Source: Eukaryota sp. TZLM1-RC
Lineage: Eukaryota; Protista; Metamonada: BaSk clade
DNA length: 64,000 nucleotides
NCBI GenBank assembly: GCA_040285825.1
Contig: JAUPSS010000004.1
Location: 2,708,550 to 2,772,549 of the forward strand
Reading direction: 5' to 3'
The translations under genes and the position numbers were made by a program. Positions 5,210 to 53,141 of the stretch are shown in pieces; positions within the stretch are counted from its first letter, which is position 1; each line of letters opens with the position of its first letter. The notes below the pieces were generated by a model. The model made no database searches. It had not been told where the DNA came from and saw nothing but the letters and a program-made list of their open reading frames with translations.

Positions 5210-7280
5210 CAAAATTTCGTAAATAATTCCGAAGATTTGACTGATATAGCACCGAGAAAACAGTCATCTGAGAAATTAAGTAAAATTTTTGAAGACCAAT
5301 GCTTTGACAACAAATAATCTAGGGCTTTGTCAGCTTTAGATCCCGGAGTTAAAGCGCCCAACAATCAAAATACTATGGATAAACTAAAAATACTTCATCC
5401 TTTGGAAGACCCTATAATGGATCAAAAATTTTACGCAACTTACTGGGAAAATTATCTATTTATGCCATCAGAAGTATTTTCGGTGAAAAGAAAGAGACCA
5501 CGCGGTAAGTCTGCCGGACTTTCTGGTATTACTATTGATCATGTAAAAGCCACGATTATTTCTTTAGAGAATTTTTTTTGAACAATAATATTTTTTTATT
5601 CACTCAACAACGAATATGAAAACTTCAGAAGTTTGTCTTCTTTTATTAACCAAATTTTTCAACAGAGTATTGACTGGTTAACTCAAATATCCAGAAGAAT
5701 TAAGAAGTTCTCGTTTGACTGCACTTGTCAAAAATTCAAAAATGGATGTTAGTTCTATTGCAGTCTCTGAGAGTTTACAAAATATTTTTTCTGCGTGTTG
5801 CTTAAACAGGTTCAATGAAAAAGCAAAAAAGATTTTATTACCCTTTCAATATGGAATTAATACCATTGATGGAGTTTCTTCAGCGATATTTGCTACAGAT
5901 GTTAATATTTCGCCAAAATGAATCCAATACTTGTATGTCATTGGATTTTAATAATGCATTCAATTCACTCAGTCGTCGCAATATCCATGGTGCATTATTG
6001 CAATATATGCCGGAATTACTGCCGCATTTTCAATCAACATATAGCACAAATTCTAATCTACATTTTGATAATTCCATTTTGAGTTCATCAAGTGGTGTAA
6101 AGCAAGGAGATCCGTTAGGACCTCTTTTGTTTTGTTTGGCCATTCATCCTATTTTATTGCAAATTCAAGACATGTTCGCTTCGCTGAAAATGATTGCATA
6201 TATGCATGATGTTTTTCTTACTGGTGATTTAAATATTGCGAAACAAGCAACTGTATGTTTTAAAGAATTATTTACCAAAATTGGTCTCTGACTTAGTTTA
6301 CTGAAATATGTTTTGTTTTCGAATTCTCAGTTTCCACAGTGGTTGATGGTATTGAAATTCAGGCCAAATTATATTCAATTGATGATATTCGTCAATTGGG
6401 TTCGTTTTTAGGAAATATTGATGATATTACCAACAAATTGTTTGAAAAGTTGAACTCAATTTCTGACAAAATTGACCGAATGATGAATTTAGATATACAA
6501 AAACACATCAAATTTACCATTATAAGACTGTGTTTTAGTTCCAACTTCAATCATATATTTCGATATACAAAACCTCTTGTCACTAGGCCTTTGGCTCAGA
6601 AGTTTAATGAATTACGTGCAAAAGTTCTGTCACAATTACTGGGATGTAAAATGTTCCAAATTCCAGATCATGCTTACCTCAGTCCAGATTATGGCGGTTT
6701 AGGGTGGACTAAGGCTTCTATTCTTACCTCGTGTGCTTTTGTTGGTGGATGCAGAAATGCAATCGTTGAGTTTTCCGAAAGATTTGCAGATTGGGAAGAT
6801 TTATTGATAACAACGCAAAGTTCCATTGTTTTTGCATTAAATGAAGAAACTTCAAAAATTGATGTAGAAAAGTGGGGTCGATGCTTTCCCCAATCATATA
6901 ATGGCAATATTCCAGAAAAGAATGTTTTAAATTTGAAGTACACTCTTCGAACATTACAGAAATGATTGACTGGAATGTATGAAAATGATCTTTATAATAA
7001 TATATGCAGCTCGGCTGTTTTAAATCAAGATATCCAGTCATTGTTATTGGAAAAATGTGTTTGTGAAAATCAGTCATCAGATTCTTCACTTTTTGTAACC
7101 ATAGTACCACGAAGATTTGGATTGTGTGCCACTAGTGAAGCATTTGTAACACAAATGAGATTACATTTGAATATCCCCGTTCATCAATTATTAGATTTTG
7201 TAGAGGAAATCTTGGTTCAATGATAGTCGTCCCATTAGTAATGAGTTAACTTAAATAAGTGTGCAAATTCAATAAATACA
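5210..7280 (+). mobile_element. Family A RLE non-LTR retrotransposon, degenerate RT region with an internal deletion
   Basis: RT motifs KSAGLSG, LDFNNAFNS, GVKQGDPLGPLLF and AYMHD (degenerate YMDD). About 0.62 kb of the knuckle/RLE region is deleted near 7193. Confidence 0.9.
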
Positions 7281-8609
7281 TTTTACCCAAATAAAGTTCT
7301 GTTCAGCATTTTACCAATCGTTGATTAATTTCAGTAAATGCTATCCAATGTTGAAGCAAGTAGCAAATATGGATGATTTCTCAATTACTGGTTCTATCAA
7401 TGTTCGTAAGAACAACTGATCTTGATACTTCATGTGACTTTTCCTATCCTTTCATCTATTATTTGATAATTGTATTTTATTTTTAATTCTCATTTAATTA
7501 TTTGAGACTGAATTGTTTGCATCATCGATTGATGTCCATCCCCATTTGATTCTAAGACATGTTTTTCATCATCAAATTTTGGTTGTATTAATTTCACTTA
7601 ATCTGTGCATTCTTTGTCATCCCGCTTTTGTTTTACAAAAACCTTATTCACTTTTTATCACCACTTCTCGAATATATAAAGTGATGACATGGCAATAACC
7701 GTGACGTTGATTTACTGAGTTTTGCAAATAAAAATAATTCAAGAGATGTAGAAACTACTCTTGATTGGTTGCCTTCTGACATTTAAAGTAAATGGCGCTT
7801 CCGTTGTTGTACACAAAAACTATCCAGAACGGAGAAAAATAAGGGTATTGTGTTTGAAATTGCAAGAAATGTCAACAATATATTTTTGAAATATGGATTT
7901 TAATTTTTGTATCAGCTCAGGCAGAATGATATTCCTGCTTTCGCAAATTTTCCGCTAGTTGTTGAAAACAGTTTACATTATTTGTTGTGGAGAATGTGTA
8001 ATGATTAGGTGAAATTTCTTACAACTTATTCTTATAAAAGATGTATTTTGTGTCTTAAATGTCATTCTACATTTGTTTTACTAACATTTCTCAGTTACTT
8101 TAGAAACATTTTAAGTGACTACGTGTATACAGTATAATAAATCAAATTTCACATTAAAAAAGCTCTACACTGTACGTACACCTTTGTTTTCATTTCGAGA
8201 TTGATTAATTTGCATGTCCTTTTTTCGTATTGTCATGGTTCCTTTTGCCATGTCTGATACATTTTATGTCTTGGAGCCTTATTTTACTGTGTCCGAATAT
8301 GGTTGGACAACCAATGAGAAAAGCAATTATTTATCAGGCACAAACAGTGAGGATTTTATCCCCTTTGGATAAAATGGTAATTCATTGTCTGGTTGCTTCT
8401 TTGAAAAGATGCTTCATTTCATAAAATGGTGAATGATTTCTAAAAGTTGGCGAAGTTTTTCTAAAATTCGACACAAATTAATCTCCATAGTTATTGAATT
8501 TTATTCTCAAATTGGACACAAACTGGTGAGTAAGACTGAGCTCTTGATATTTGTTAATAATCACCTCACTGTATCTGTATCCTATTTGTGTTTAAATGAT
8601 TTAACTTAA

Positions 8610-9330
8610 ATGATCATTAATCAATTATCATCAAAAGAAAATTGTATTTGTTCGAGTTCACCACAACTCACTTTGTGTCATGCTCTGAATTGTTCGAAAT
8701 TGATAAGTTATCGTTGTTTATTAATTGAAGCTGTTAGAGACACTGTTTTCAATATGGTACAAACTGCAAGAATATCGTTTATCAAAGAGCCTCTGCTGAA
8801 GGAAACACTCTCATAGAATAATTCTGGCTCTGATAATAGAGGTGATGTATGTTGTGATGGGATTGAGAACTCTGAAGCTGTTGTTGACCTGGTCTTCTGT
8901 AATGTTGAAAATGACACTTTGTTTCACAGAAGAAAACTTAATCCTGTATGTTCTCTAGAATTTAAAGCTAAAGAACAACGTAGAAAATATGACAAAGATA
9001 TCGGAAAAGCTAATGTTGGTAGAAATACCCAACTAGTTTTATGGCTTTTCCATTTTCGATAAATGGAAGACTATCAGCAGAAGCAAAAACCTTTTTGAAT
9101 GACTTTTAAAAAATGGTTCAAGAAAAAACAAAAGATTTGATATTTTTTTATGAAGCTCACAGATTCATTTTGCAATTATTAATAGATTACCTTGGTTTTT
9201 CAATCAAATAAGAGAAGTTTTTCCTGGACAGCAAGCAGTTCAAGATTATGTAAAGCAAATGTTGGTTCAATGATATTCGTCCCATCAGTTATGAATTATT
9301 TAAATTAGGTGTGCATTTTCAATAAATAAA
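8610..9330 (+). mobile_element. Older, diverged family A 3' fragment
   Basis: CICSSSPQLTLCHALNC, RGDVCCD, multiple stops, and a similar 3' UTR. Confidence 0.85.
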
Positions 9331-9744
9331 TGGTTATCGTTTCAAGCTTTCAGCAAATTAATTTTGTTATTGTTCGAGATTAACGGTAGTTTTTAGAAAA
9401 ATAATTTTCGTAAACCATAATTTTTTATGAGAAACTGAAGTGAACAATAAAAAGTAACATTGAAAAAGTTCAACTATCGTCACTCTTTCAGTCAGGGGCA
9501 ACGTCTTTGCAAACTGAAGAACCATGAACAGACCTCTTTTGCATAGTATTAGGATGATGTTGTCAGAAGGTAATGGGAGGGTTGTATAAATTTGTTGTAC
9601 CGGATTTACTCACTTCAATTTAACTGCAATAGAGTTGTGTACTTAAAGATTGAAAGTAACAGTAAAGAGAAAGGACATTAGTAAAGAAAAGAACTCCTTG
9701 CATAATTTTGTCAAATATTGTTAAATTATGAAGCTTCAAGTGCG

Positions 9745-9863
9745 GCGGCTGTGGTCTAGTGGCAAGACAGGATGCTTTAACTTTCATTTACAATGATTAA
9801 TTTCGGAACTCAGTTGCACCCCAATTAAACATCAACACCCGGGTTCGATTCCCGGCGGCCGCT
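9745..9863 (+). tRNA. Intron-containing tRNA gene with anticodon UUA (ochre-suppressor type; Gln-like body)
   Basis: Acceptor stem GCGGCTG/CGGCCGC, D stem GTCT/AGAC, anticodon stem GGATG/CATCA, loop CT-TTA-A with a 48-nt intron (9781-9828) at position 37/38, T arm CCGGG-TTCGATT-CCCGG, then a T6 Pol III terminator. Confidence 0.85.
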
Positions 9864-10139
9864 TTTTTCGATTCAGAACTGCAATGCAAAGAAAACATCA
9901 ATCAATGGCACGACAAGTGTGTGTTCAATAAACATCAGTATGTTTCAGACTAAATAGTCAGAATACACCAAATGAATGTTCCTGACAGAAACCAAATATT
10001 GACTCCATTCATTCCAAATTAAGAGCCCAAAGCTGGAGTATAAATGGCATCAAAGGAGATCAGTAGAATAATTGTGTATGAAATTGGTTTCAGAAATGCA
10101 TTTTGAGTGAAATCAAGATCCTATTCACATACCAAATTC

Positions 10140-10450
10140 CGTTGGACAGAAGGAAGTGAGGTCATGGAAATTTAATCACAAGTTTCCTTTTTGTTCCTTT
10201 TGCTCTTCCCGATTTTTGGCCAGACTGGTTTAAATTTTTTCAATAATTTTGATATTCTTTGCCGTTGAAATGGTGAGAAATTTGCGGAGAATTTATGGAC
10301 GAATTGTGTCATTTTTGCTTTGTACAGAAGTGTTCCCAGGTGATTAAATTTAATTATGTCCAAGCTTCGCAAGGATTCTTCAAGAGTTGATGCAGAGAAT
10401 TCTGTTTCTTTTGTAATTTAATTTGTTTTGTTTTGTTTAATAATTACGTA
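10140..10450 (+). mobile_element. Degenerate C-terminal RLE fragment of another retrotransposon family
   Basis: My translation FVPFALPIFGQTGLNFFNNF..LWTNCVIFALYRSVPR parallels the RLE C-termini of the other families. Repeated at ~18404-18714. Confidence 0.6.
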
Positions 10451-11768
10451 GTCACTAGACCTTTGGCTCAGAAGTTTAATGAGTTACGTGCAAAAGTTCT
10501 GTCTCAATTACTGGGATGTAAAATGTTTCAAATTCCAGATCATGCTTACCTTAGTCCACATTATGGCGGTTTAGGGTGGACGAAGGCTTCTATTCTTACC
10601 TCGTGTGCTTTTGTTGGTTGATGTAGAAATGCAATCTTTGAGTTTTCCGAAAGATTTGCAGATTGGGAAGATTTATTGATGACAACGCAAAGTTCCACTG
10701 TTTTTGCATTAAATGAAGAAATTTCAAAAATTGATGTAGAAAAATGGGGTCGATGTTTTCCCCAATCATTCAATGGCAATATTCCAGAAAAAAATGTTTT
10801 AAATTTGAAGTACACTCTTCGAACATTACAGAAACGATTGACTGGAATGTATGAAAAAGATCTTTATAATAATATATGCAGGTCGGCTGTTTTAAATCAA
10901 GATCTTCACTCATTGTTATTGGAAAAGGGTGTTTGTGAAAACAAGTCGTCAGATTCTTCACTTTTTGTAACCTTTGTACCACGAAGATTTGGATTGTGTG
11001 CCACTAATGATGCATTTGTAGCAAAAATGAGATTATATTTGAACATCCCCATTAACCAATTATTATCAAAAGAAAAATGTATTTGTTCGAATTCACCTCA
11101 ACTCACTTTGCGCCATGCTCTGAATTGCTCTAAATTGATAACTTGTCGTTCTTCATTACATGATGCTGTTAGAGACACTGTTTTCAATATGGCACAAACT
11201 GCAAGGATATCGTGTATCAAAGAGCCCCTGCTGAAGGAAACATTTCTCTGAATAATTTTGGTTCTGATGATAGAGGTGATATATACTGTGTTTTGATTGA
11301 TAATTCTGAAGCTATTGTTGACTTTGTCTCATGTAATGTTGCAAATGATACTTTGGTTCACAGAAGAAAACTTAATCCTGTGGCTGCTCTGGACTTTAAA
11401 GCAAAAGAGAAACATAGAAAATATGATAAAGATATTGAAGAGGCAAATGTCGATGGAAAATACACAGCTGGTTTTTATTGCTTTCCCATTTTCGATAAAT
11501 GGAAGATTATCAGTTGAAGCAGAAACTTTTTTGGATGACTTCCAAAAAATGGTGCAAGAAAAAACAATGAAAAGATTTGATATTTTTTTATGGCGTTCAC
11601 GGATTCAATTTGCCATTATTAATAGATTACCGCGGTTATTCAATCGAATAAGAGAAGCTTTAGCTAGACAGCAAGCAGATCAAGATTTTGTAGAGGAAAT
11701 CTTTGTTCAATGATAGTCGTCCCATTAGTATTGAGTCAATTTAATTAAGTGTGCAAATTCAATAAATA
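10451..11768 (+). mobile_element. Family A retrotransposon, 3' half
   Basis: Runs from VTRPLAQKF through YGGLG, the knuckle and RLE to the 3' UTR. Confidence 0.9.
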
Positions 11769-12849: not shown

Positions 12850-15535
12850 CAAAATTTCGTAAATAATTCCGAAGATTTGACTGATGTAGCACCGAGAAAA
12901 CAGTCATCTGAGAAATTAAGTAAAATTTTTGAAGACCAATGCTTTGACAACAAATAATCTAGGGCTTTGTCAGCTTTAGATCCCGGAGTTAAAGCGCCCA
13001 ACAATCAAAAATACTATGGATAAACTAAAAATACTTCATCCTTTGGAAGACCCCATAATGGATCAAAAATTTTACGCAACTTACTGGGAAAATTATCCAT
13101 TGATGCCATCAGAAGTATTTTCGGTGATCAAAAAGAGACCACGCGGTAAGTCTGCCGGACTTTCTGGTATTACTATTGATCATGTAAAAGCCGCAATTAT
13201 TTCTTCAGAGAATATTTTTTTAACAACAATATTTTTTTATTCATTCAACAACGAATATGAAAACTTCAGAAGTTTGTCTTCTTTTATTAACCAAATTTTT
13301 CAACAGAGTATTGTCTGGTCAACTCAAATACCAGAAGAATTAAGAAGTTCTCGTTTGACTGCACTTGTCAAAAATTCAAAAATAAATGTTCGTCCTATTG
13401 CAGTCTCTTAGAGCTTACACTATATTTTTTCTGCGTGTTGCTTAAGCAGGTTCAATGAGAAAGCAAAAAAAATTTTATTACCCTTTCAATATGGAATTAA
13501 TACCATTGATGGAGTTTCTTCAGCGATATTTGCTACAGATGTTAATATTTCGCCAAAATGAATCCAATACTTGTATGTCATTGGATTTTAGTAATGCATT
13601 CAATTCACTCAGTCGTCGCAGTATCCATGGTGCATTATTGCAATATATGCCGGAATTACTGCCGCATTTTCAATCAACATATAGCACAAATTCTAATCTA
13701 CATTTTGATAATTCCATTTTGAGTTCATCAAGTGGTGTAAAGCAAGGAGATCCGTTAGGACCTCTTTTGTTTTGTTTGGCCATTCATCCTATTTTATTGC
13801 AAATTCAAGACATGTTCGCTTCGCTGAAAATGATTGCATATATGCATGATGTTTTTCTTACTGGTGATTTAAATATTGCGAAACAAGCAACTGTATGTTT
13901 TAAAGAATTATTTACCAAAATTGGTCTCTGACTTAATTTACTGAAATATGTTTTGTTTTCGAATTCTCAGTTTCCACAATAGTTGATGGTATTGAAATTC
14001 AGGCCAAATTATATTCAATTGATGATATTCGTCAATTGGGTTCGTTTTTAGGAAATATTGATGATATTACCAACAAATTGTTTGAAAAGTTGAACTCAAT
14101 TTCTGACAAAATTGACCGAATGATGAATTTAGATATACAAAAACACATCAAATTTACCATTATAAGACTGTGTTTTAGTTCCAACTTCAATCATATATTT
14201 CGATATACAAAACCTCTTGTCACTAGGCCTTTGGCTCAGAAGTTTAATGAATTACGTGCAAAAGTTCTGTCACAATTACTGGGATGTAAAATGTTCCAAA
14301 TTCCAGATCATGCTTACCTCAGTCCAGATTATGGCGGTTTAGGGTGGACTAAGGCTTCTATTCTTACCTCGTGTGCTTTTGTTGGTGGATGCAGAAATGC
14401 AATCGTTGAGTTTTCCGAAAGATTTGCAGATTGGGAAGATTTATTGATAACAACGCAAAGTTCCATTGTTTTTGCATTAAATGAAGAAACTTCAAAAATT
14501 GATGTAGAAAAGTGGGGTCGATGCTTTCCCCAATCATATAATGGCAATATTCCAGAAAAGAATGTTTTAAATTTGAAGTACACTCTTCGAACATTACAGA
14601 AATGATTGACTGGAATGTATGAAAATGATCTTTATAATAATATATGCAGCTCGGCTGTTTTAAATCAAGATATCCAGTCATTGTTATTGGAAAAATGTGT
14701 TTGTGAAAATCAGTCATCAGATTCTTCACTTTTTGTAACCATAGTACCACGAAGATTTGGATTGTGTGCCACTAGTGAAGCATTTGTAACACAAATGAGA
14801 TTACATTTGAATATCCCCGTTCATCAATTATTATCGAAAGAAAAATGCATTTGTTTGAATTCATCTCAACTCACTTTGCGCCATGCTCTGAATTGTTCTA
14901 AATTAATAACTTATCGTTTTTCATTACATGATGCTGTTAGAGACACTTTTTTTAATATGTCACAAACTGCAAGAATATCGTGTATCAAAGAGCCTCTGCT
15001 GAAGGAAACACTGTCTCTGAATAATTTTGGTTCTGATGATAGAGGTGATGTATACTGTGATTGGATTGATAATTCTGAAGCTATTGTTGATGTTGTCTCA
15101 TGTAATGTTTCAAATGATACTTTGGTTCACGGAACAAAACTTAATCCTGTGGCTGCTCTGGATTTTAAAGCAAAAGAGAAACATAGAAAACATGATAAAG
15201 ATATTGAAGAGGCTAATGTCAATAGAAAAAAACAGCTGGTTTTTATTGTTTTCCCATTTTCGATGAATTGAAGATTATCAGATGAAGTAGAAACTTTTTT
15301 TGAATGACTTCCAAATAATGGTTCAAGAAAAAAAATGAAAAGATTTGATTTTTTTATGGCGTTCACGGATTCAATTTGCCATTATTAATAGATTACCTCG
15401 GTTTTTCAATCGAATAAGAGAAGCTTTAGCTAGACAGCAAGCAGATCAAGATTTTGTAGAGGAAATCTTGGTTCAATGATAGTCGTCCCATTAGTAATGA
15501 GTTAACTTAAATAAGTGTGCAAATTCAATAAATAC
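12850..15535 (+). mobile_element. Family A retrotransposon, 5'-truncated and degenerate (RT+RLE)
   Basis: RT motifs and RLE in broken frames; carries a small antisense insert at ~13210-13263. Confidence 0.9.
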
Positions 15536-16873
15536 ATTTTACCCAAATAAAGTTCTGTTCAGCATTTTACCAATCGTTGATTAATTTCAGTAAATGCTAT
15601 CCAATGTTGAAGCAAGTAGCAAATATGGATGATTTCTCAATTACTGGTTCTATCAATGTTCGTAAGAACAACTGATCTTGATACTTCATGTGACTTTTCC
15701 TATCCTTTCATCTATTATTTGATAATTGTATTTTATTTTTAATTCTCATTTAATTATTTGAGACTGAATTGTTTGCATCATCGATTGATGTCCATCCCCA
15801 TTTGATTCTAAGACATGTTTTTCATCATCAAATTTTGGTTGTATTAATTTCACTTAATCTGTGCATTCTTTGTCATCCCGCTTTTGTTTTACAAAAACCT
15901 TATTCACTTTTTATCACCACTTCTCGAATATATAAAGTGATGACATGGCAATAACCGTGACGTTGATTTACTGAGTTTTGCAAATAAAAATAATTCAAGA
16001 GATGTAGAAACTACTCTTGATTGGTTGCCTTCTGACATTTAAAGTAAATGGCGCTTCCGTTGTTGTACACAAAAAACTATCCAGAACGGAGAAAAATAAG
16101 GGTATTGTGTTTGAAATTGCAAGAAATGTCAACAATATATTTTTGAAATATGGATTTTAATTTTTGTATCAGCTCAGGCAGAATGATATTCCTGCTTTCG
16201 CAAATTTTCCGCTAGTTGTTGAAAACAGTTTACATTATTTGTTGTGGAGAATGTGTAATGATTAGGTGAAATTTCTTACAACTTATTCTTATAAAAGATG
16301 TATTTTGTGTCTTAAATGTCATTCTACATTTGTTTTACTAACATTTCTCAGTTACTTTAGAAACATTTTAAGTGACTACGTGTATACAGTATAATAAATC
16401 AAATTTCATATTAAAAAAGCTCTACACTGTAAGTACACCTTTGTTTTCATTTCATTTCGAGATTGATTAATTTGCATGTCCTTTTTTCGTATTGTCATGG
16501 TTCCTTTTGCACTATTTCTGATACACTTTATGTCTTGGAGCCTTATTTTATTGTGTCCGAATATGGTTGGACAACCAATGAGAAAAGCAATTATTTATCA
16601 GGCACAAACAGTGAAGATTTTATCCCCTTTGTATAAAATGGTAATTCATTGTCTGGTTGCTTCTTTGAAAAGATGCTTCATTTCATACAATGGTGAATGA
16701 TTTCTAAAAGTTGGCGTAGTTTTTCTAAAATTCGACACAAATTAATCTCCATAGTTATTGAATTTTATTCTCAAATTGGACACAAACTGGTGAGTAAGAC
16801 TGAGCTCTTGATATTTGTTAATAATCACCTCACTGTATCTGTATCCTATTTGTATTTAAATGATTTAACTTAA

Positions 16874-17593
16874 ATGATCATTAATCAATTATCATCAAAA
16901 GAAAATTGTATTTGTTCGAGTTCACCACAACTCACTTTGTGTCATGCTCTGAATTGTTCGAAATTGATAAGTTATCGTTGTTTATTAATTGAAGCTGTTA
17001 GAGACACTGTTTTCAATATGGTACAAACTGCAAGAATATCGTTTATCAAAGAGCCTCTGCTGAAGGAAACACTCTCATAGAATAATTCTGGCTCTGATAA
17101 TAGAGGTGATGTATGTTGTGATGGGATTGAGAACTCTGAAGCTGTTGTTGACCTGGTCTTCTGTAATGTTGAAAACGACACTTTGTTTCACAGAAGAAAA
17201 CTTAATCCTGTAAGTTCTCTAGAATTTAAAGCTAAAGAACAACGTAGAAAATATGACAAAGATATCGGAAAAGCTAATGCTGGTAGAAATACCCAACTAG
17301 TTTTATGGCTTTTCCATTTTCGATAAATGGAAGACTATCAGCAGAAGCAAAAACCTTTTTGAATGACTTTTAAAAAATGGTTCAAGAAAAAACAAAAGAT
17401 TTGATATTTTTTTATGAAGCTCTCAGATTCATTTTGCAATTATTAATAGATTACCTTGGTTTTTCAATCAAATAAGAGAAGTTTTTCCTGGACAGCAAGC
17501 AGTTCAAGATTATGTAAAGCAAATGTTGGTTCAATGATATTCGTCCCATCAGTTATGAATTATTTAAATTAGGTGTGCATTTTCAATAAATAA
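16874..17593 (+). mobile_element. Older, diverged family A 3' fragment (array copy)
   Basis: Near-identical to 8610-9330. Confidence 0.85.
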
Positions 17594-18008
17594 ATGGTTA
17601 TCGTTTCAAGCTTTCAGCAAATTAATTTTGTTATTGTTCGAGATTAACGGTAGTTTTTAGAAAAATAATTTTCGTAAACCATAATTTTTTATGAGAAACT
17701 GAAGTGAACAATAAAAAGTAACATTGAAAAAGTTCAACTATCGTCACTCTTTCAGTCAGGGGCAACATCTTTGCAAACTGAAGAACCATGAACAGACCTC
17801 TTTTGCATAGTATTAGGATGATGTTGTCAGAAGGTAATGGGAGGGTTGTATAAATTTGTTGTATCGGATTTACTCACTTCAATTTAACTGCAATAGAGTT
17901 GTGTACTTAAAGATTGAAAGTAACAGTAAAGAGAAAGGACATTAGTAAAGAAAAGAACTCCTTGCATAATTTTGTCAAATATTGTTAAATTATGAAGCTT
18001 CAAATGTG

Positions 18009-18127
18009 GCGGCTGTGGTCTAGTGGGAAGACAGGATGCTTTAACTTTCATTTACAATGATTAATTTCGGAAGTCAGTTCCACCCCAATTAAACATCAAC
18101 ACCCGGGTTCGATTCCCGGCGGCCGCT
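18009..18127 (+). tRNA. Second copy of the intron-containing UUA-anticodon tRNA
   Basis: Same cloverleaf, anticodon TTA at 18041-18043. Differs from the first copy by one D-loop base and two intron bases; T6 terminator present. Confidence 0.85.
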
Positions 18128-18714
18128 TTTTTCGATTCAGAACTGCAATGCAAAGAACACATCAATCAATGGCATGACAAGTGTGTGTTCAACAAACGTC
18201 AGTATGTTTCAGACTAAATAGTCAGAATACACCAAATGAATGTTCCTGACAGAAACCAAATATTGACTCCATTCATTCCAAATTAAGAGCCCAAAGCTGG
18301 AGTATAAATGGCATCAAAGGAGATCAGTAGAATAAATGTGTATGAAATTGGTTTCAGAAATGCATTTTGAGTGAAATCAAGATCCTATTCACATACCAAA
18401 TTCCGTTGGACAGAAGGAAGTGAGGTCATGGAAATTTAATCACAAGTTTCCTTTTTGTTCCTTTTGCTCTCCCCGATTTTTGGCCAGACTGGTTTAAATT
18501 TTTTCAATAATTTTGATATTCTTTGCCGTTGAAATGGTGAGAAATTTGCGGATAATTTATGGACGAATTGTGTCATTTTTGCTTTGTACAGAAGTGTTCC
18601 CAGGTGATTAAATTTAATTATGTCCAAGCTTCGCAAGGATTCTTCAAGAGTTGATGCAGAGAATTCTGTTTCTTTTGTAATTTAATTTGTTTTGTTTTGT
18701 TTAGTAATTACGTA

Positions 18715-20032
18715 GTCACTAGACCTTTGGCTCAGAAGTTTAATGAGTTACGTGCAAAAGTTCTGTCTCAATTACTGGGATGTAAAATGTTTCAAATTCC
18801 AGATCATGCTTACCTTAGTCCACATTATGGCGGTTTAGGGTGGACGAAGGCTTCTATTCTTATCTCGTGTGCTTTTGTTGGTTGATGTAGAAATGCAATC
18901 TTTGAGTTTTCCGAAAGATTTGCAGATTGGGAAGATTTATTGATGACAACGCAAAGTTCCACTGTTTTTGCATTAAATGAAGAAATTTCAAAAATTGATG
19001 TAGAAAAATAGGGTCGATGTTTTCCCCAATCATTCAATGGCAATATTCCAGAAAAAAATGTTTTAAATTTGAAGTACACTCTTCGAACATTACAGAAACG
19101 ATTGACTGGAATGTATGAAAATGATCTTTATAATAATATATGCAGGTCGGCTGTTTTAAATCAAGATCTTCACTCATTGTTATTGGAAAAGGGTGTTTGT
19201 GAAAACAAGTCGTCAGATTCTTCGCTTTTTGTAACCATTGTACCACGAAGATTTGGATTGTGTGCCACTAATGAAGCATTTGTAACAAAAATGAGATTAT
19301 ATTTGAACATCCCCATTAACCAATTATTATCAAAAGAAAAATGTATTTGTTCGAATTCACCTCAACTCATTTTGCGCCATGCTCTGAATTGCTCTAAATT
19401 GATAACTTGTCGTTCTTCATTACATGATGCTGTTAGAGACACTGTTTTCAATATGGCACAAACTGCAAGGATATCGTGTATCAAAGAGCCCCTGCTGAAG
19501 GAAACATTTCTCTGAATAATTTTGGTTCTGATGATAGAGGTGATATATACTGTGTTTTGATTGATAATTCTGAAGCTATTGTTGACTTTGTCTCATGTAA
19601 TGTTGCAAATAATACTTTGGTTCACAGAAGAAAACTTAATCCTGTGGCTGCTCTGGACTTTAAAGCAAAAGAGAAACATAGAAAATATGATAAAGATATT
19701 GAAGAGGCAAATGTCGATGGAAAATACACAGCTGGTTTTTATTGCTTTCCCATTTTCGATAAACGGAAGATTATCAAATGAAGCAGAAACTTTTTTGGTT
19801 GACTTCCAAATAATGTTTCAAGAAAAAACAATGAAAAGATTTGATATTTTTTTATGGCGTTCACGGATTCAATTTGCCATTATTAATAGATTACCGCGGT
19901 TATTCAATCGAATAAGAGAAGCTCTAGCTAGACAGCAAGCAGATCAAGATTTTGTAGAGGAAATCTTTGTTCAATGATAGTCGTCCCATTAGTATTGAGT
20001 CAATTTAATTAAGTGTGCAAATTCAATAAATA
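18715..20032 (+). mobile_element. Family A retrotransposon, 3' half (array copy)
   Basis: Near-identical to 10451-11768. Confidence 0.9.
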
Positions 20033-23885: not shown

Positions 23886-25964
23886 ATGCGCAATGCCCTG
23901 AAATATGCTACCCAGGCATGGGAACAGGGCCGTATCAGCGCTTTAGACTTCTTGATGGTCTCTAACATACTTTCTGGTCGCTCTGCTGATGATATCAGTC
24001 AATACCCTATTTTTCCATGGATATTCAGTGATTACTCCGCTCCTACAATTTCCACTACTCCTACCTCTACCCAGTTTAGAGATCTATGCAAGCCTATGGG
24101 CGCACAAAGTCCTCAACGTGCCTCATATGTTAAAGAACGCTACGAAAGCCTCTTATCTACAGACACACCCCCTTTCCACTGGGGCTCTCTCTACTCCAAC
24201 CCTGGCATCGTCGTCAACTGGCTTTTGAGAATTGAACCCTTTGCTTCTGCACTGGTTCATCTTCAATCCGGCTACTTTGATAATCCAGATAGACTCACTC
24301 ATTCCATCTCTGGAGCATGGAGAACCTCTGCATTAGGGGGACCTAGCGATGTTAAGGAACTTGTACCAGAAGTCTTTTGTTTTCCTGAATTTTCTCGTAA
24401 TTCTGGACTTTTCCTGGGCAAACGTCATGATTCTGAGCTAGTTGACGATCTCGTTCTTCCACCTTGGTCCTCTAACCCTAACCCTAACCTTTCTCCACTC
24501 AGATTCTGTAACATCCATCGCAAAGCCCTTGAACTCTCCACCAATCTAACCAGCTGGATTGATTTGATCTTTGGGAAGCACCAGCAAGGAGAAGGGGCCG
24601 TGGAGAGACTTAATTGCTTTTATTACCTTGCCTATTCTTCTTCCATTGAAGAAGTTCATAAGTTGACTGACCCCCATGCGAGATCAGCAGCTCGACACCA
24701 GGTTCACTGTTTTGGATCGATACCTCGTTGTCTGTGGCCAGGCGGGTTTCACCATTTACATTTGAAACTTGTTCCAAGAAATCTTTGCCCTTGGTATGTT
24801 GGCAAATTTTTAAAATTTTTGCAAATTTCGGAGTTGAGCTCACCGCTGAGCTCTCTTGGAAAAGAGGGTGAAAAATTCAATATTGACCTGTTTGGTGATA
24901 GTCCGACTCTGATAAAGGGATCAGCATTTGCAACTCGAAAGTTTTACTGGTCGTGGTCAAATTTTGGAGGTTTTGGTCAAGTTGCCCTAATACCCAGACA
25001 AAATAGTTCACTTTCTCTCTCCCAATCATCGTCACATCCCAAAATTTTAACCCTCCCGTCGCGCATCACGTCATGTACTGCTGATGAGCTCTTCCTGGGG
25101 GTCGGCACAGAAAGCGGTCAATCGTTTCTATTGACTTCAAACGACTTTACCCCTACTATCCTGACCACTTATTCCACACTCCACAAAAGCAGTATAATTT
25201 CCATGTCGATTCACCACCGTGATAATCTTCTCGCCACCCTTGATACTCGAGGTTGTTTCGCTGTCTGGGAACTCAGCGATGGAGTTGTTTTAACCAATGG
25301 AAATTTGAAGGGAGCAAAGTTTGTGGAGTTTGTCCTTGTGGAAGGAAGTATTTCTTTAGCTCTAGTATCACGTCATGCGATCACGATAGTGTCCCCTTTC
25401 AAGGGTTTGAATGAAGTTAGAATCACCACACCCCAAGATTCAGTCTTAGCCTCAATATCATGTTGTACACGGCCTCTCAGAAGGCTCTCCCGCTTGAGTA
25501 AACTTGGAAGCTCCAATGGATGTGTCGTTTTACTTACAGGACATTTAGATGGATTTGTGAGGTTTTGGACGGCTGATTCTGATGGTAAAATACGATTATT
25601 GGCAAAGTTCACCACCTTTGATGTTACAAAACCTGTCGTATCGATATTTGCTGATGTAAATAGTGTTATTGCTTGTAGTTCAGCTCATGTCAATTCTTGG
25701 ACAATACCGTCAAATGAATTCAAAAGAAGTCTTGTCGAAGAGGTCAAAAATGTGAGCTGTTCTGTTTGTGATAAAAAATTTGGGTTGATTAGTAACTTTA
25801 GTACTTCTAAATGTGAGTATTGCCAAGAAAATGTTTGTAGCAGTTGTTTAGATTTCTTTGAACTTATTTGGAGAGGTTCACCTGAAGGAAAAGAAGGAAA
25901 GTACAAGCTCAAAATTTGTTTCAAATGTGCTTATGATCTCTATTCAAAATTGTTAAGTTTTTAA
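23886..25964 (+). CDS. BEACH-WD40-FYVE-like protein (possibly N-terminally truncated)
   Basis: BEACH motifs SGRSADDISQYPIFPWIFSDY, FRDLCKPMGAQ, HWGSLYS, DVKELVPE, WIDLIFG; WD40-like repeats; C-terminal CxxC..CxxC..CxxC..CxxC FYVE-like finger. Confidence 0.9.
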   Translation: MRNALKYATQAWEQGRISALDFLMVSNILSGRSADDISQYPIFPWIFSDYSAPTISTTPTSTQFRDLCKPMGAQSPQRASYVKERYESLLSTDTPPFHWGSLYSNPGIVVNWLLRIEPFASALVHLQSGYFDNPDRLTHSISGAWRTSALGGPSDVKELVPEVFCFPEFSRNSGLFLGKRHDSELVDDLVLPPWSSNPNPNLSPLRFCNIHRKALELSTNLTSWIDLIFGKHQQGEGAVERLNCFYYLAYSSSIEEVHKLTDPHARSAARHQVHCFGSIPRCLWPGGFHHLHLKLVPRNLCPWYVGKFLKFLQISELSSPLSSLGKEGEKFNIDLFGDSPTLIKGSAFATRKFYWSWSNFGGFGQVALIPRQNSSLSLSQSSSHPKILTLPSRITSCTADELFLGVGTESGQSFLLTSNDFTPTILTTYSTLHKSSIISMSIHHRDNLLATLDTRGCFAVWELSDGVVLTNGNLKGAKFVEFVLVEGSISLALVSRHAITIVSPFKGLNEVRITTPQDSVLASISCCTRPLRRLSRLSKLGSSNGCVVLLTGHLDGFVRFWTADSDGKIRLLAKFTTFDVTKPVVSIFADVNSVIACSSAHVNSWTIPSNEFKRSLVEEVKNVSCSVCDKKFGLISNFSTSKCEYCQENVCSSCLDFFELIWRGSPEGKEGKYKLKICFKCAYDLYSKLLSF

Positions 25965-41902: not shown

Positions 41903-42183
41903 ACAAAATTACTCAATTTATTTGTATTATTTTCTTTGGAACAACTTCTTTATCTCGATGTATTCGTAAAATATTCTGAATAAATAATTTACGTTCTGCA
42001 GAGTTCAATCTATTTGTTTCAGTGTTTACGTTCAAATGTTTGGTCAAATTTGGAATTGCTGCAGTAAGTGCGCAAAGCTGGAGTATAAATTGCATTAAAA
42101 GAGATCAGTAGAATAAATGTGTATGAAATTGGTTTCAGAAATGCATTTTGAGTGAATTCCAGATCCTATTCACATACCAAATT

Positions 42184-43490
42184 ATACCAATATATCTCCA
42201 GTATAGAGAAAAAACCTTATCATATCTCTCCTGTTCCAACCACTGTGGGTCCAGGATATTTTCCCATTGATACAAGAACAATATGGACAATTATTAGACA
42301 AACATTGATGGACGATTTGTTGCCTGATCAGAGATTAAAAATGTCCAATACATTAGCCCAAATTACGAAATTCAAACCACCTCAGTAATTTGACTTTTGG
42401 TCTAATATTCTCGATTTAAACCAACCAATGTTCAAACAAAAGATTTATAAATTCAACAACATTATTCACACAGATGGATTTAATATTGCAGTAGAATTTG
42501 TTCGTCGGGATTTACAAGGTCAGAAATGTAAGCCAGACAACAAGGCAAGTATTTCTGATTTATATATTGATGATGTTGATGTTGATGCTTTTCAAGACAA
42601 ACGAATTGTTGTTTGTGATCCTGGAAAACGTGATTTATTGTATTTTGGGAGCAAAAAGACTGATCAAGAACTAGCCATGGTGCCTGAACATGAAACTGAA
42701 CAGCAAAGAAATAGTCGGGTGATGAATCAAGACAAGAAGTACAAATGGTTGAGAATGACTCAGATGTCCTGGTCTTTGAAAAGTAGGATGAATGAAAAGC
42801 AAAAACGATGGGCGACAAAGTATATTGAGGTAGAATACGACAGGAACCAAATGATAGAGTCTAACGAAATGACAATTGAAGATGCAAACACCGAATTATC
42901 AGCATTTGCTGCAAGTTCGGCGACTTTTATAGACTTTTCCAACTTTGTGGTTGCAAAACTTCGGCAAGTTTTTTTGACAATTGACTTTTATAGTCTTGAC
43001 TTGTGGAGCATTCATGAAATGCAAGCTTTTATTCACAAGCAAAAGACTGAAAGTTGGTTGTTAAAAAGCCTTGTTCAGCAGTTTGGCAATCCGAAAGACA
43101 CTTTAATACTAATGGGTGATTATGGTAAAAAAGGTTCCAAGAATTTGAAACATCAAAAACCGAGGTATTGGATGGATTCAATTTCTGAAAAGAAATGGTT
43201 TTGAAGTATTGATGATTAATGAAGCTTTCACTTCAGCAAAATGTCCTGTTTGTTTTGAAAAGGTTGCTACGTTTTTGAGAGTAACAAATCCCAGAGTGTA
43301 TAGAACAGAAAAGACTCCTGTTACTACATGTCATGGTTTATTAGCGTGCAACAGTGACAGTTGCAAACTCAGTAACCAAGGCTCAACAAAGCTTTTCAAT
43401 AGAAATAAGCTGGCTTGTTTGAATATGTTTGCAATTGCAGAAGCCAGAATGAGTGGCAATGAAAGGCCTCAGTATCTGTGTAGTAGATAG
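42184..43490 (+). pseudogene. Fanzor copy F3, 5'-truncated, with one in-frame TAA and one frameshift
   Basis: FPIDT, IHTDG, RuvC-I VVCDPGKRDL, LILMGDYG, INEAFTSAKCPVC, CHGLLAC, RuvC-III NRN (D>N), terminal RPQYL. Confidence 0.92.
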
Positions 43491-51615: not shown

Positions 51616-53141
51616 ATGAACCTCGCCTCCAGCTTTGGCAATCCTATCAACTTTGGCTCTCCATCAAGTAAGCGATTATATGACTTAAAATGTCTACGAA
51701 ACGAGTTCAAAAAATATGATGTTCATCGCCAAATTGAAATCATCCACGATGAGAACGGTCAAGACATCACCGAAAGTCGACTTGCTTTAAAAAGAATAAT
51801 ATCATCAAGAAGTCACTTGACCCCACTTGAAACACTACCACCAAGATCAGCAAGAATAGATCATTGGAGACAGGTGGAGCAGACGCGAAATGAAATCAAA
51901 AAACCTAAGGGTCAAGTTATGCAATGAAGCTTCAAATACAAGGCTTAACTGAACAATTAACCAAAAAAGACGCTGAAAACCAAGAATTAATATTACAAAC
52001 GTCAAGACTCAATCATGGTAAAAAAGATAATGTTGCCATTGACTTTAATTCTGTACTTCCAAAGCTGCTATCTAGTAGTCAACTGAGTGACCAACGGTTA
52101 GTTTTCAAAGGAAAGACTTGTAATTCTCATAGAGCCATTTTATCACTTTTTTCTGGTTATTTTGAAATGTGTTTCTCTCAACACTTTGTAGATTCAGAGG
52201 AGCATGAGTATGATCTAAGCGATGATTTGCCAGTTTCTAATGAAATTTTTGAAACTGTTTTGAATTATTTCCCATTTTCGATAAATGGAAGATTATCAGT
52301 TGAAGCAGAAACTTTTTTGGATGACTTCCAAAAAATGGTACAAGAAAAAACAATGAGAAGATTTGATATATTTTTATGGCGTTCACGGATTCCATTTGCC
52401 ATTATTAATAGATTACCACGGTTGTTCAATCGAATAAGAGAAGCTTTAGCTAGACAGCAAGCAGATCAAGATTTTGTAGAGGAAATCTTGATCCAATGAC
52501 AGTCGTCCCATTAGTATTGAGTTAATTTAATTAAGTGTGCAAATTCAATAAATAAATTTTTATTATTTGTATGGGCAAGAAGTCATTTTGAGTGTTGATA
52601 ATTGTTACGAAATTATGTTTTGTGCAAGATTTCTCAAAATTCCATGTTTGTATGAAAGCTCTCTTAAACAAATTCAGGATAATATTCATTTATCTGGTTT
52701 TCTTACCTCATTGATCATCAAAGCAGAAGAGTGTGGTGATCACCAAATTTTCAGGGAACTAACAGGGCAAACAGAAGGTGATATTCCTGCTTGTTTGAAG
52801 GAGTTATTGCCCAATGTGCATGATTTTGAATCCTTATCTCCTATGATTCTTAGGAAAACAATCTTGCAGTTCTTAGTTTCCACTGAATACAACAATTCCA
52901 TCTATATTGAATGGCTTTCCTGTTCACTAGTGAAGTCGTATTTAGAAGCAACAAGTGAATGGTCTAGCCATTAATTTGGTGAATTGCTTGATTCTATTAA
53001 TGTCTCAAGCTTGACTGCTTCAAAGTGTCGAAGTTTGGTTGTTGATAAGTTGGTTGAGTACAAGGAACTTGAAGTTATCATTTCCTTGTTCTTTATCAAA
53101 AAAGTTTTGCCTTCGTGTGATTTGTGTTTTTGTGCTAAGTA
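51616..53141 (+). pseudogene. BTB/POZ-domain gene disrupted by a retrotransposon
   Basis: HRAILSLFSGYF..FETVLNY|LYGQEVILSVDNCYEIMFCARFLKIPCL is restored when 52271-52568 is removed. Confidence 0.85.
52271..52561 (+). mobile_element. Short family A 3' insertion
   Basis: Family A C-terminus plus 3' UTR; TSD ATTATTT at 52264-70 and 52562-68. Confidence 0.9.

Follow-up and report, generated by a model that had tools for sequence, protein, structure and literature searches.

A tRNA gene with the anticodon TTA, interrupted by an intron, is present in two copies in a 64,000-nt stretch of the Skoliomonas litria genome (strain TZLM1-RC; GCA_040285825.1, 6.9-Mb contig JAUPSS010000004.1). This stretch is referred to as the window, and its position 1 is record position 2,708,550. 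Judging from the covariance model, the gene finder and the predicted fold, this is a genuine nuclear tRNA gene of the Pol III type that contains an intron. S. litria has a standard code, in which TAA works as a stop codon. We favour, with middling confidence, the reading of a young paralogue, set apart from a Glu-type tRNA by an anticodon shift, which may be tolerated as a feeble ochre suppressor or may be starting to decay; most likely the gene plays no part in a changed code. Cognate stop-reading tRNAs in reassigned codes are already known, as are anticodon shifts (PMC3923123). What appears to be new is that a tRNA gene with the anticodon UUA occurs naturally in a metamonad with the standard code and has a traceable relative that carries a sense anticodon, and we offer it as a testable lead, a putative suppressor.

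Both copies matched the Rfam tRNA family RF00005 above its gathering score of 29 (43.7 bits for copy 1), in alignments that cover the full model and place an insert of 48/49 nt after position 37 (Table 1). No further tRNA-like matches to the model were found in the 64-kb window, even at E ≤ 1. ARAGORN called neither copy when run without introns, but with the -i option it called both as tRNA-Stop(tta), and the spliced 71-mer was called Stop(tta) too.

Table 1. Features of the duplicated block and of the TTA tRNA gene (positions in the window).
Feature	Position	Strand	Basis
Duplicated block with copy 1	7193..10500	+	self-BLAST, 98.9% identity over 3316 nt to 15449-18764
tRNA gene copy 1, anticodon TTA, intron-containing	9745..9863	+	Rfam RF00005, ARAGORN -i
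Exon 1 (positions 1-37)	9745..9780	+	sequence, Rfam alignment
Acceptor stem, copy 1	9745-9751 with 9856-9862	+	sequence
A-box-like TGGTCTAGTGG	9752-9762	+	sequence
D arm, copy 1	9754-9768	+	sequence
Anticodon stem, copy 1	9770-9774 with 9830-9834	+	sequence
Anticodon TTA (positions 34-36)	9777..9779	+	sequence; same loop from five splice registers
48-nt intron at 37/38	9781..9828	+	sequence, register test, constrained fold
Exon 2 (positions 38-73), discriminator T	9829..9863	+	sequence, Rfam alignment, fold
T arm with perfect B box GGTTCGATTCC	9839-9855	+	sequence
T6 run, Pol III terminator-like, opening at discriminator U73	9863..9868	+	sequence
Duplicated block with copy 2	15449..18764	+	self-BLAST
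tRNA gene copy 2 (anticodon 18041-18043, intron 18045-18092)	18009..18127	+	Rfam 43.4 bits, ARAGORN -i

The acceptor stem of copy 1 has 7 bp including one U-G pair, and the D stem has 4 bp with the loop AGTGGCA, followed by A26. The anticodon loop reads C32 U33 U34 U35 A36 A37, then A38, and the variable loop has 4 nt (ACAC). Of the features of a nuclear tRNA gene of Pol III type 2, the conserved U8, A14, G18-G19, U33, G53-T54-T55-C56, A58 and C61 are all present in the sequence and in the Rfam alignment. The minimum-energy structure of the spliced 71-mer is a cloverleaf (-25.9 kcal/mol) with an anticodon stem of only 4 bp, since G27 (9770) faces A43 (9834) and pair 27:43 is left open in both TTA copies. 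Accumulated stem breaks and loss of promoter or terminator, by which a tRNA pseudogene is recognized, were not seen: one of the 21 pairs is mismatched, and nothing is lost from the A and B boxes or the T6 run. Rfam, ARAGORN -i and the fold agree with the original prediction of an intact-looking, intron-containing UUA tRNA gene, and every detail of it that we checked was right. For a yardstick, a canonical tRNA-Thr(TGT) of S. litria (JAUPSS010000001.1, L047:20318-20390, minus strand) scored 71.4 bits; it has a T4 run 9 nt downstream.

Whichever of five registers (-4 to 0) is used to remove the 48 nt, the mature sequence is identical; registers -5 and -6 also keep TTA but lose U33. This bears out the earlier claim that any splice register that keeps U33 leads to the anticodon TTA. 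The last four intron bases, TTAA, form a repeat and are able to pair with U34-A37 in copy 1. The proximal anticodon-intron pair is described as the sole conserved, critical feature of pre-tRNA introns in eukaryotes (PMC10485636). In the TTA gene this canonical pair (position 32 with intron position -3) cannot form, as C32 faces U. When the fold is constrained to keep the cloverleaf, the partners of bases 33-37 are A38 and the four bases at the 3′ end of the intron, so that the 3′ splice site falls within a 5-bp helix, and inspection by hand revealed no bulge-helix-bulge motif in any register. By itself this would point to inefficient splicing.

This odd intron design is family-wide rather than damage to the UUA copy, because a relative with the anticodon TTC, described below, is likewise without the anticodon-intron pair (U32 faces C). 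The same alternative helix is open to the relative, except for a C-C mismatch at one place. The closing bases of exon 1 recur at the close of the intron in each gene: TTAA in the TTA gene and TTTCA in the TTC relative. The design would then be a property of the family, perhaps of S. litria as a whole, and the tRNA introns of this organism may follow a rule different from canonical pairing. A piggyBac-like insertion was considered as the source of the TTAA-flanked intron and rejected: terminal inverted repeats are absent, and the TTC relative has a homologous intron.

To judge from the self-alignment of the window, the two gene copies are the result of a recent tandem duplication of an 8.26-kb repeat-rich stretch. 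Of their 119 positions 3 differ: two lie in the intron, and the third is position 20, a variable position of the D loop. Owing to the two intron differences (9809 and 9816 versus 18073 and 18080), what is a weak hairpin in copy 1 becomes a perfect 4-bp stem, GGAA/TTCC, in copy 2. Over 419 nt centred on the gene there are 10 differences between the copies, 3 of them inside the gene, and neither copy appears to show a sign of extra constraint or decay since the duplication. As both belong to one young segmental duplication, they represent one event rather than two, and their agreement is uninformative on selection. The retention of TTA in both array copies had been noted earlier and is correct, but coming from a single recent segmental duplication it adds no support.

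The block at 7193-10500 is made up of non-coding DNA and also holds a diverged 3′ fragment of a retroposon (8615-9328) and, at 10020-10138, a dispersed repeat of 119 nt. The tRNA gene is embedded in non-coding sequence, with fragments of a non-LTR retroposon family on one side and this repeat on the other. The 119-nt element has sharp ends and is found again at 42065-42183 (93% identical). It gathers loose-ended contigs in the read alignment and is therefore a small dispersed repeat. One array unit after another has the same in-frame TGA codons in its retroposon ORFs (6289/13929/22191, 6963/14603/22865 and 10619/18883); such recurrence means that they were inherited via segmental duplication and do not have separate origins. 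The mobile-element ORFs of the window itself were either absent from the protein records or unique in an identical-protein search.

The S. litria assembly comprises 31.9 Mb in 16 contigs with 55% repeats and was built from 41x Nanopore and 206x Illumina data; the published RNA-seq is poly-A selected (PMC11316075). When contigs from three DNA runs were aligned over 9329-10402 at 80% likeness, they matched only in the dispersed repeats at 10050-10400 and brought up no paralogues.

The closest relative among the ~0.3 Mb seen of the 31.9-Mb genome is another intron-containing tRNA of 101 nt (40.3 bits with Rfam), located on the same contig at ~1,241,472-1,241,572 (L042:5948-6048, minus strand), 1,466,978 nt (~1.47 Mb) before the window. 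Read in the canonical 37/38 register it has the anticodon TTC and a 30-nt intron, while ARAGORN favours a 31/32 register that leads to TCA and a 'SeC' call. The two genes share the first three acceptor pairs (G1-C72/C2-G71/G3-C70), the 5′ strand of the D stem and most of the D loop, the 5′ strand of the anticodon stem (GGATG), the 4-nt variable loop ending in AC, and the T loop. The 5′ part of the intron (first 22 nt) is recognizably homologous as well. The anticodon loops read TTTTCA/A in the relative and CTTTAA/A in the window gene (the slash marks the intron), so that position 36 is C versus A. Pair 13:22 is U13-G22 in the relative and U13-A22 in the TTA gene. No T4 run follows the TTC relative within about 70 nt on its 3′ side, compared with the T6 of the TTA gene, which has the better terminator of the two.

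Several features of the TTA gene are Glu-type: its closest relative reads UUC, and it has U11-A24, no base 47, and A46. An exact-pattern scan with the 5′ half of the gene found no match in either metagenome or viral contigs, and the 3′ half gave 35 matches, mostly to archaeal-type tRNA-Gly and some to His, Pro and Glu tRNAs. In these metagenome tRNAs, mostly tRNA-Gly, 21 of the first 25 bases, which lie outside the searched pattern, match the window tRNA. The 3′-half matches establish a Gly/Glu-like character for the acceptor and T arm only; the acceptor stem and D arm seem to resemble Gly/Glu-type tRNAs. An origin from tRNA-Gln(UUG) by one change, as first suggested, fits poorly with a UUC relative as the closest in the ~0.3 Mb seen, with the Glu-type D arm and homologous intron, and with the Gly/Glu-like body. 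We also considered a 6-nt tandem duplication of the loop CTTTCA as proof of TTC ancestry and discarded it, as the hexamer aligns with the start of the relative's intron without an indel.

C36 belongs to Glu identity in the systems studied. For the amino acid carried, ancestry points tentatively to Glu, with low confidence, as the identity elements (position 36 and the discriminator) differ from those of the relative. The discriminator is U in the TTA gene, G in the TTC relative and A in the tRNA-Glu of strain RCL. The latter is a canonical, intron-less tRNA-Glu(TTC) (L001:13965-14036, minus strand; U1-A72, A73, 53.5 bits), which has its T arm in common with the window tRNA and differs in the acceptor and anticodon stems.

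The exons of the TTA gene and the TTC relative differ at 17 of 71 positions (24% divergence), and 11 of these differences are in stems. Nine of the 21 stem pairs are affected, yet eight of the nine are still standard pairs, and pairs 4:69 and 7:66 have changed on both sides, from G-C to A-U. When 11 stem changes were placed randomly by simulation, 5.7-7.4 broken pairs were expected, and the probability of at most one broken pair was 0.0001-0.004. Pairing that is kept despite this many stem changes means that both lineages have long evolved as working tRNAs under selection for the cloverleaf. The sole broken pair is 27:43, and by this comparison the 4-bp anticodon stem is a derived change of the TTA lineage, because the pair is broken only in the TTA copies and is G-C in the relative.

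Among the ORFs of at least 150 codons in the window, TAA is the terminal stop in 9/18, TGA in 7/18 and TAG in 2/18. A 692-aa BEACH-WD40-FYVE protein (23886-25964, plus strand) ends at TAA and aligned over 100% of its length with orthologues of 682 aa in strain RCL and 721 aa in strain GEM-RC1. The use of TAA in half of the long ORFs and this co-linearity uphold the earlier view that the code is not globally reassigned. The genome paper makes no mention of a variant code, used ordinary gene finders with normal results, and reports BUSCO scores on par with those of the sister species (PMC11316075). The BEACH ORF starts directly at the BEACH domain and runs into WD40 repeats and a weak FYVE match. 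Since the RCL and GEM-RC1 orthologues are equally short, the missing long N-terminal part is a feature of the lineage and not a truncation by the repeat array.

All three stop codons, TGA, TAA and TAG, occur in frame in the retroposon copies of the window, a mix that simple decay would be expected to produce. No TAA common to diverged retroposon copies, and no in-frame TAA at a conserved position, was found in the window. Two lone in-frame TAAs had been put forward as possible readthrough sites, and both turned out to be weak candidates. The one at 42386 lies in a truncated, decaying copy of a Fanzor ORF (F3) without a paralogue in the window, and it is uninformative because readthrough and decay cannot be told apart from one nonsense site in a copy that has already decayed. 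The other, at 52972, lies within a disturbed BTB gene (51924-53100, plus strand), which is broken after ~107 codons by a fragment of the common retroposon (52244-52560) and resumes in another frame. BTB paralogues from elsewhere gave no alignment to the BTB gene of the window.

We propose that the gene arose within a small family of intron-containing tRNAs in S. litria, characterized by the G1-C72/C2-G71/G3-C70 acceptor stem and a Glu-type D arm. The TTA and TTC lineages would have split long ago, with selection holding the cloverleaf, and the window lineage would then have undergone the changes C36 to A, giving UUA, and C43 to A, by which the top pair of the anticodon stem was lost; the direction of both is presumed. 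For C36 to A, this polarity would follow from the two lineages together with the expectation that any tRNA conserved over so long a time should read sense. UUA could instead be the older state, or both anticodons could derive from another one such as the UCC of Gly. Anticodon shifts between eukaryotic tRNA paralogues are documented (PMC3923123). If transcribed, spliced and charged, the product would be expected to pair with UAA as its cognate and with UAG by wobble, as is expected of UUA anticodons (PMC11687900, PMC5304391). It would compete with eRF1, most likely inserting Glu, although this identity is presumed from ancestry. Any suppressor activity would have to be weak, because TAA is the commonest stop, the code is standard and strong suppression would be costly.

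The possibilities listed at the outset (a suppressor, an incipient or relic code change, a tRNA kept unspliced, a pseudogene) still cover the field. A history in which the cloverleaf was preserved, with no further damage in either copy, fits a functional gene under maintenance no less than a young mutant, and the better terminator of the TTA gene also counts against the favoured reading. The gene could be a natural ochre suppressor kept at low expression under selection for programmed low-frequency readthrough of TAA, with its activity held down by weak splicing and the 4-bp stem. Its clients would be C-terminal extensions of host proteins or mobile elements with gag-TAA-pol or interrupted Fanzor frames. 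The intact A and B boxes, T6 run and tertiary-pair bases and the structural selection on the family speak for this, and so does A36-A37-A38, the motif of the i6A37 transferase. This enzyme (Mod5/MiaA) recognizes A36-A37-A38, and i6A37 strengthens the decoding of UNN codons. Selected readthrough nevertheless sits badly with TAA as the most used stop, with the mixed retroposon stops that include no TAA common to diverged copies, with the truncated state of Fanzor F3, and with the lack of a copy beside the orthologous BEACH gene in two sister species. We regard it as unlikely, though not far-fetched. We would call improbable, and more speculative, a version in which a working cognate UAA-reading tRNA of Glu-type ancestry beside UAA as the main stop makes S. 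litria a living 'ambiguous intermediate'. The odd intron and short stem would keep its activity low, and mobile elements with a single in-frame TAA (gag/pol, Fanzor) might use the tRNA.

It is doubtful that the gene is transcribed into an RNA with no role in translation, unspliced or unaminoacylated and in effect a tRNA pseudogene or tRNA-like RNA. The reason would be that GluRS, GlnRS and GlyRS all use position 36 as an identity element. The impossible anticodon-intron pair (C32 versus U), the 3′ splice site in a 5-bp helix, the mismatch at 27:43, U73 versus the G73 of the relative, and the setting amid nested mobile elements are in keeping with such an RNA. In Loxodes, clusters of same-body tRNAs with altered anticodons are read as pseudogenes (bioRxiv 10.1101/2023.10.09.561518). 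The TTC relative, however, is also without the anticodon-intron pair in a family under structural selection, and only one stem pair is broken at 24% exon divergence. A change of code under way or left over, with UAA (perhaps UAR) passing to or from sense, seems very unlikely. The Skoliomonas lineage is sister to Fornicata, where hexamitin diplomonads and Iotanema have reassigned UAR or UAG. The ambiguous-intermediate route requires, before anything else, a cognate UUA tRNA (PMC11687900), and metamonads have altered this part of the code several times (PMC5304391). Against this, conserved genes of S. litria end at TAA where their orthologues end, and ordinary gene finders gave BUSCO scores like those of the sister species (PMC11316075). 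An error of assembly or polishing at position 36, where the true base would be C (or G) in an ordinary sense tRNA, would be a considerable surprise. The read contigs have no coverage over the tRNA, but A36 is present in both copies, which differ from each other elsewhere, in an assembly with 206x Illumina and 41x Nanopore data (PMC11316075). We keep to a young anticodon-shift paralogue as the favoured reading.

Among known systems, the peritrich ciliates (NCBI code 30) read UAR as Glu with tRNA-Glu(UUA/CUA). Like the S. litria gene in the favoured reading, these are of a Glu-type lineage in which position 36 of UUC became A to give a cognate reader of UAA. UAR is, however, a frequent sense codon in peritrichs and no longer a stop, whereas TAA is the main stop in S. 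litria, where Glu identity is presumed. The tRNA-Gln(UUA)/(CUA) of Tetrahymena, Condylostoma and hexamitin diplomonads are likewise nuclear and became complementary to a stop codon via one change from a sense tRNA (PMC5304391, PMC11687900), and the hexamitins also share the metamonad context. They have the body of the organism's own tRNA-Gln and act in a reassigned code. The S. litria gene probably has another body; its nearest relative in the ~0.3 Mb seen reads UUC, and it has an intron in a genome with a standard code. In UAR=Gln codes UAA is sense and not stop, but TAA ends 9/18 long ORFs in the S. litria window.

Rogers and Griffiths-Jones (2014) give 14 possible single-base changes that lead to stop-complementary anticodons (PMC3923123). 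Their anticodon-shift paralogues resemble the S. litria case in that a duplicated tRNA is one anticodon base away from a relative of the same architecture; a shift to a stop anticodon, as in S. litria, is a rare class. In contrast to a young, decaying cluster, the S. litria pair are old paralogues (76% exon identity) in which compensatory changes kept the cloverleaf.

Schultz and Yarus reportedly found that breaking pair 27:43 raises misreading. An unpaired 27:43 is also found in the 4-bp-stem tRNA-Trp(CCA) of Blastocrithidia, Condylostoma, Blepharisma and Loxodes, as reported by Kachale et al. 2023 (via bioRxiv 10.1101/2023.10.09.561518). Those tRNAs have a sense anticodon and decode UGA as a near-cognate, whereas the S. 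litria anticodon is cognate to UAA, a working stop there. The 4-bp stem pointed out in the original prediction is thus a real G27/A43 mismatch, but its readthrough effect is known for near-cognate decoding, which a cognate UUA does not need. The short stem is unneeded for UAA recognition and may simply be damage. The yeast SUP4-o and E. coli supG tRNAs are laboratory ochre suppressors that arose by a single anticodon change, and weak ones are tolerated under the standard code. Unlike these laboratory-selected tRNAs, the S. litria gene is natural, duplicated and found in a wild genome.

Stop reassignment is thought to start with a tRNA that competes against the release factor, a stage rarely caught in a standard-code genome. 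Metamonads have changed the meaning of UAR several times, and Skoliomonas adjoins Fornicata. If the gene is expressed and charged, S. litria is a culturable organism in which the cost and targets of a natural cognate ochre suppressor can be measured; if the gene is silent, it cleanly illustrates anticodon-shift paralogues as raw material for code change. The introns of this S. litria family, without the pair held essential in yeast, Xenopus and human, also bear on how the splicing endonuclease chooses its sites.

The loci orthologous to the BEACH gene in strains RCL and GEM-RC1 have other neighbours and no UUA tRNA, and the only tRNA at these loci is the canonical tRNA-Glu(TTC) in RCL. Four other places in the S. 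litria genome, sampled via a shared mobile-element protein, contained one tRNA-Thr. Genes with RCC1-like (RLD) repeats recur in the sampled loci (L044:11944-13995, L044:16649-20429 and L047:14918-17161), two of them side by side, which suggests that this family has expanded in S. litria.
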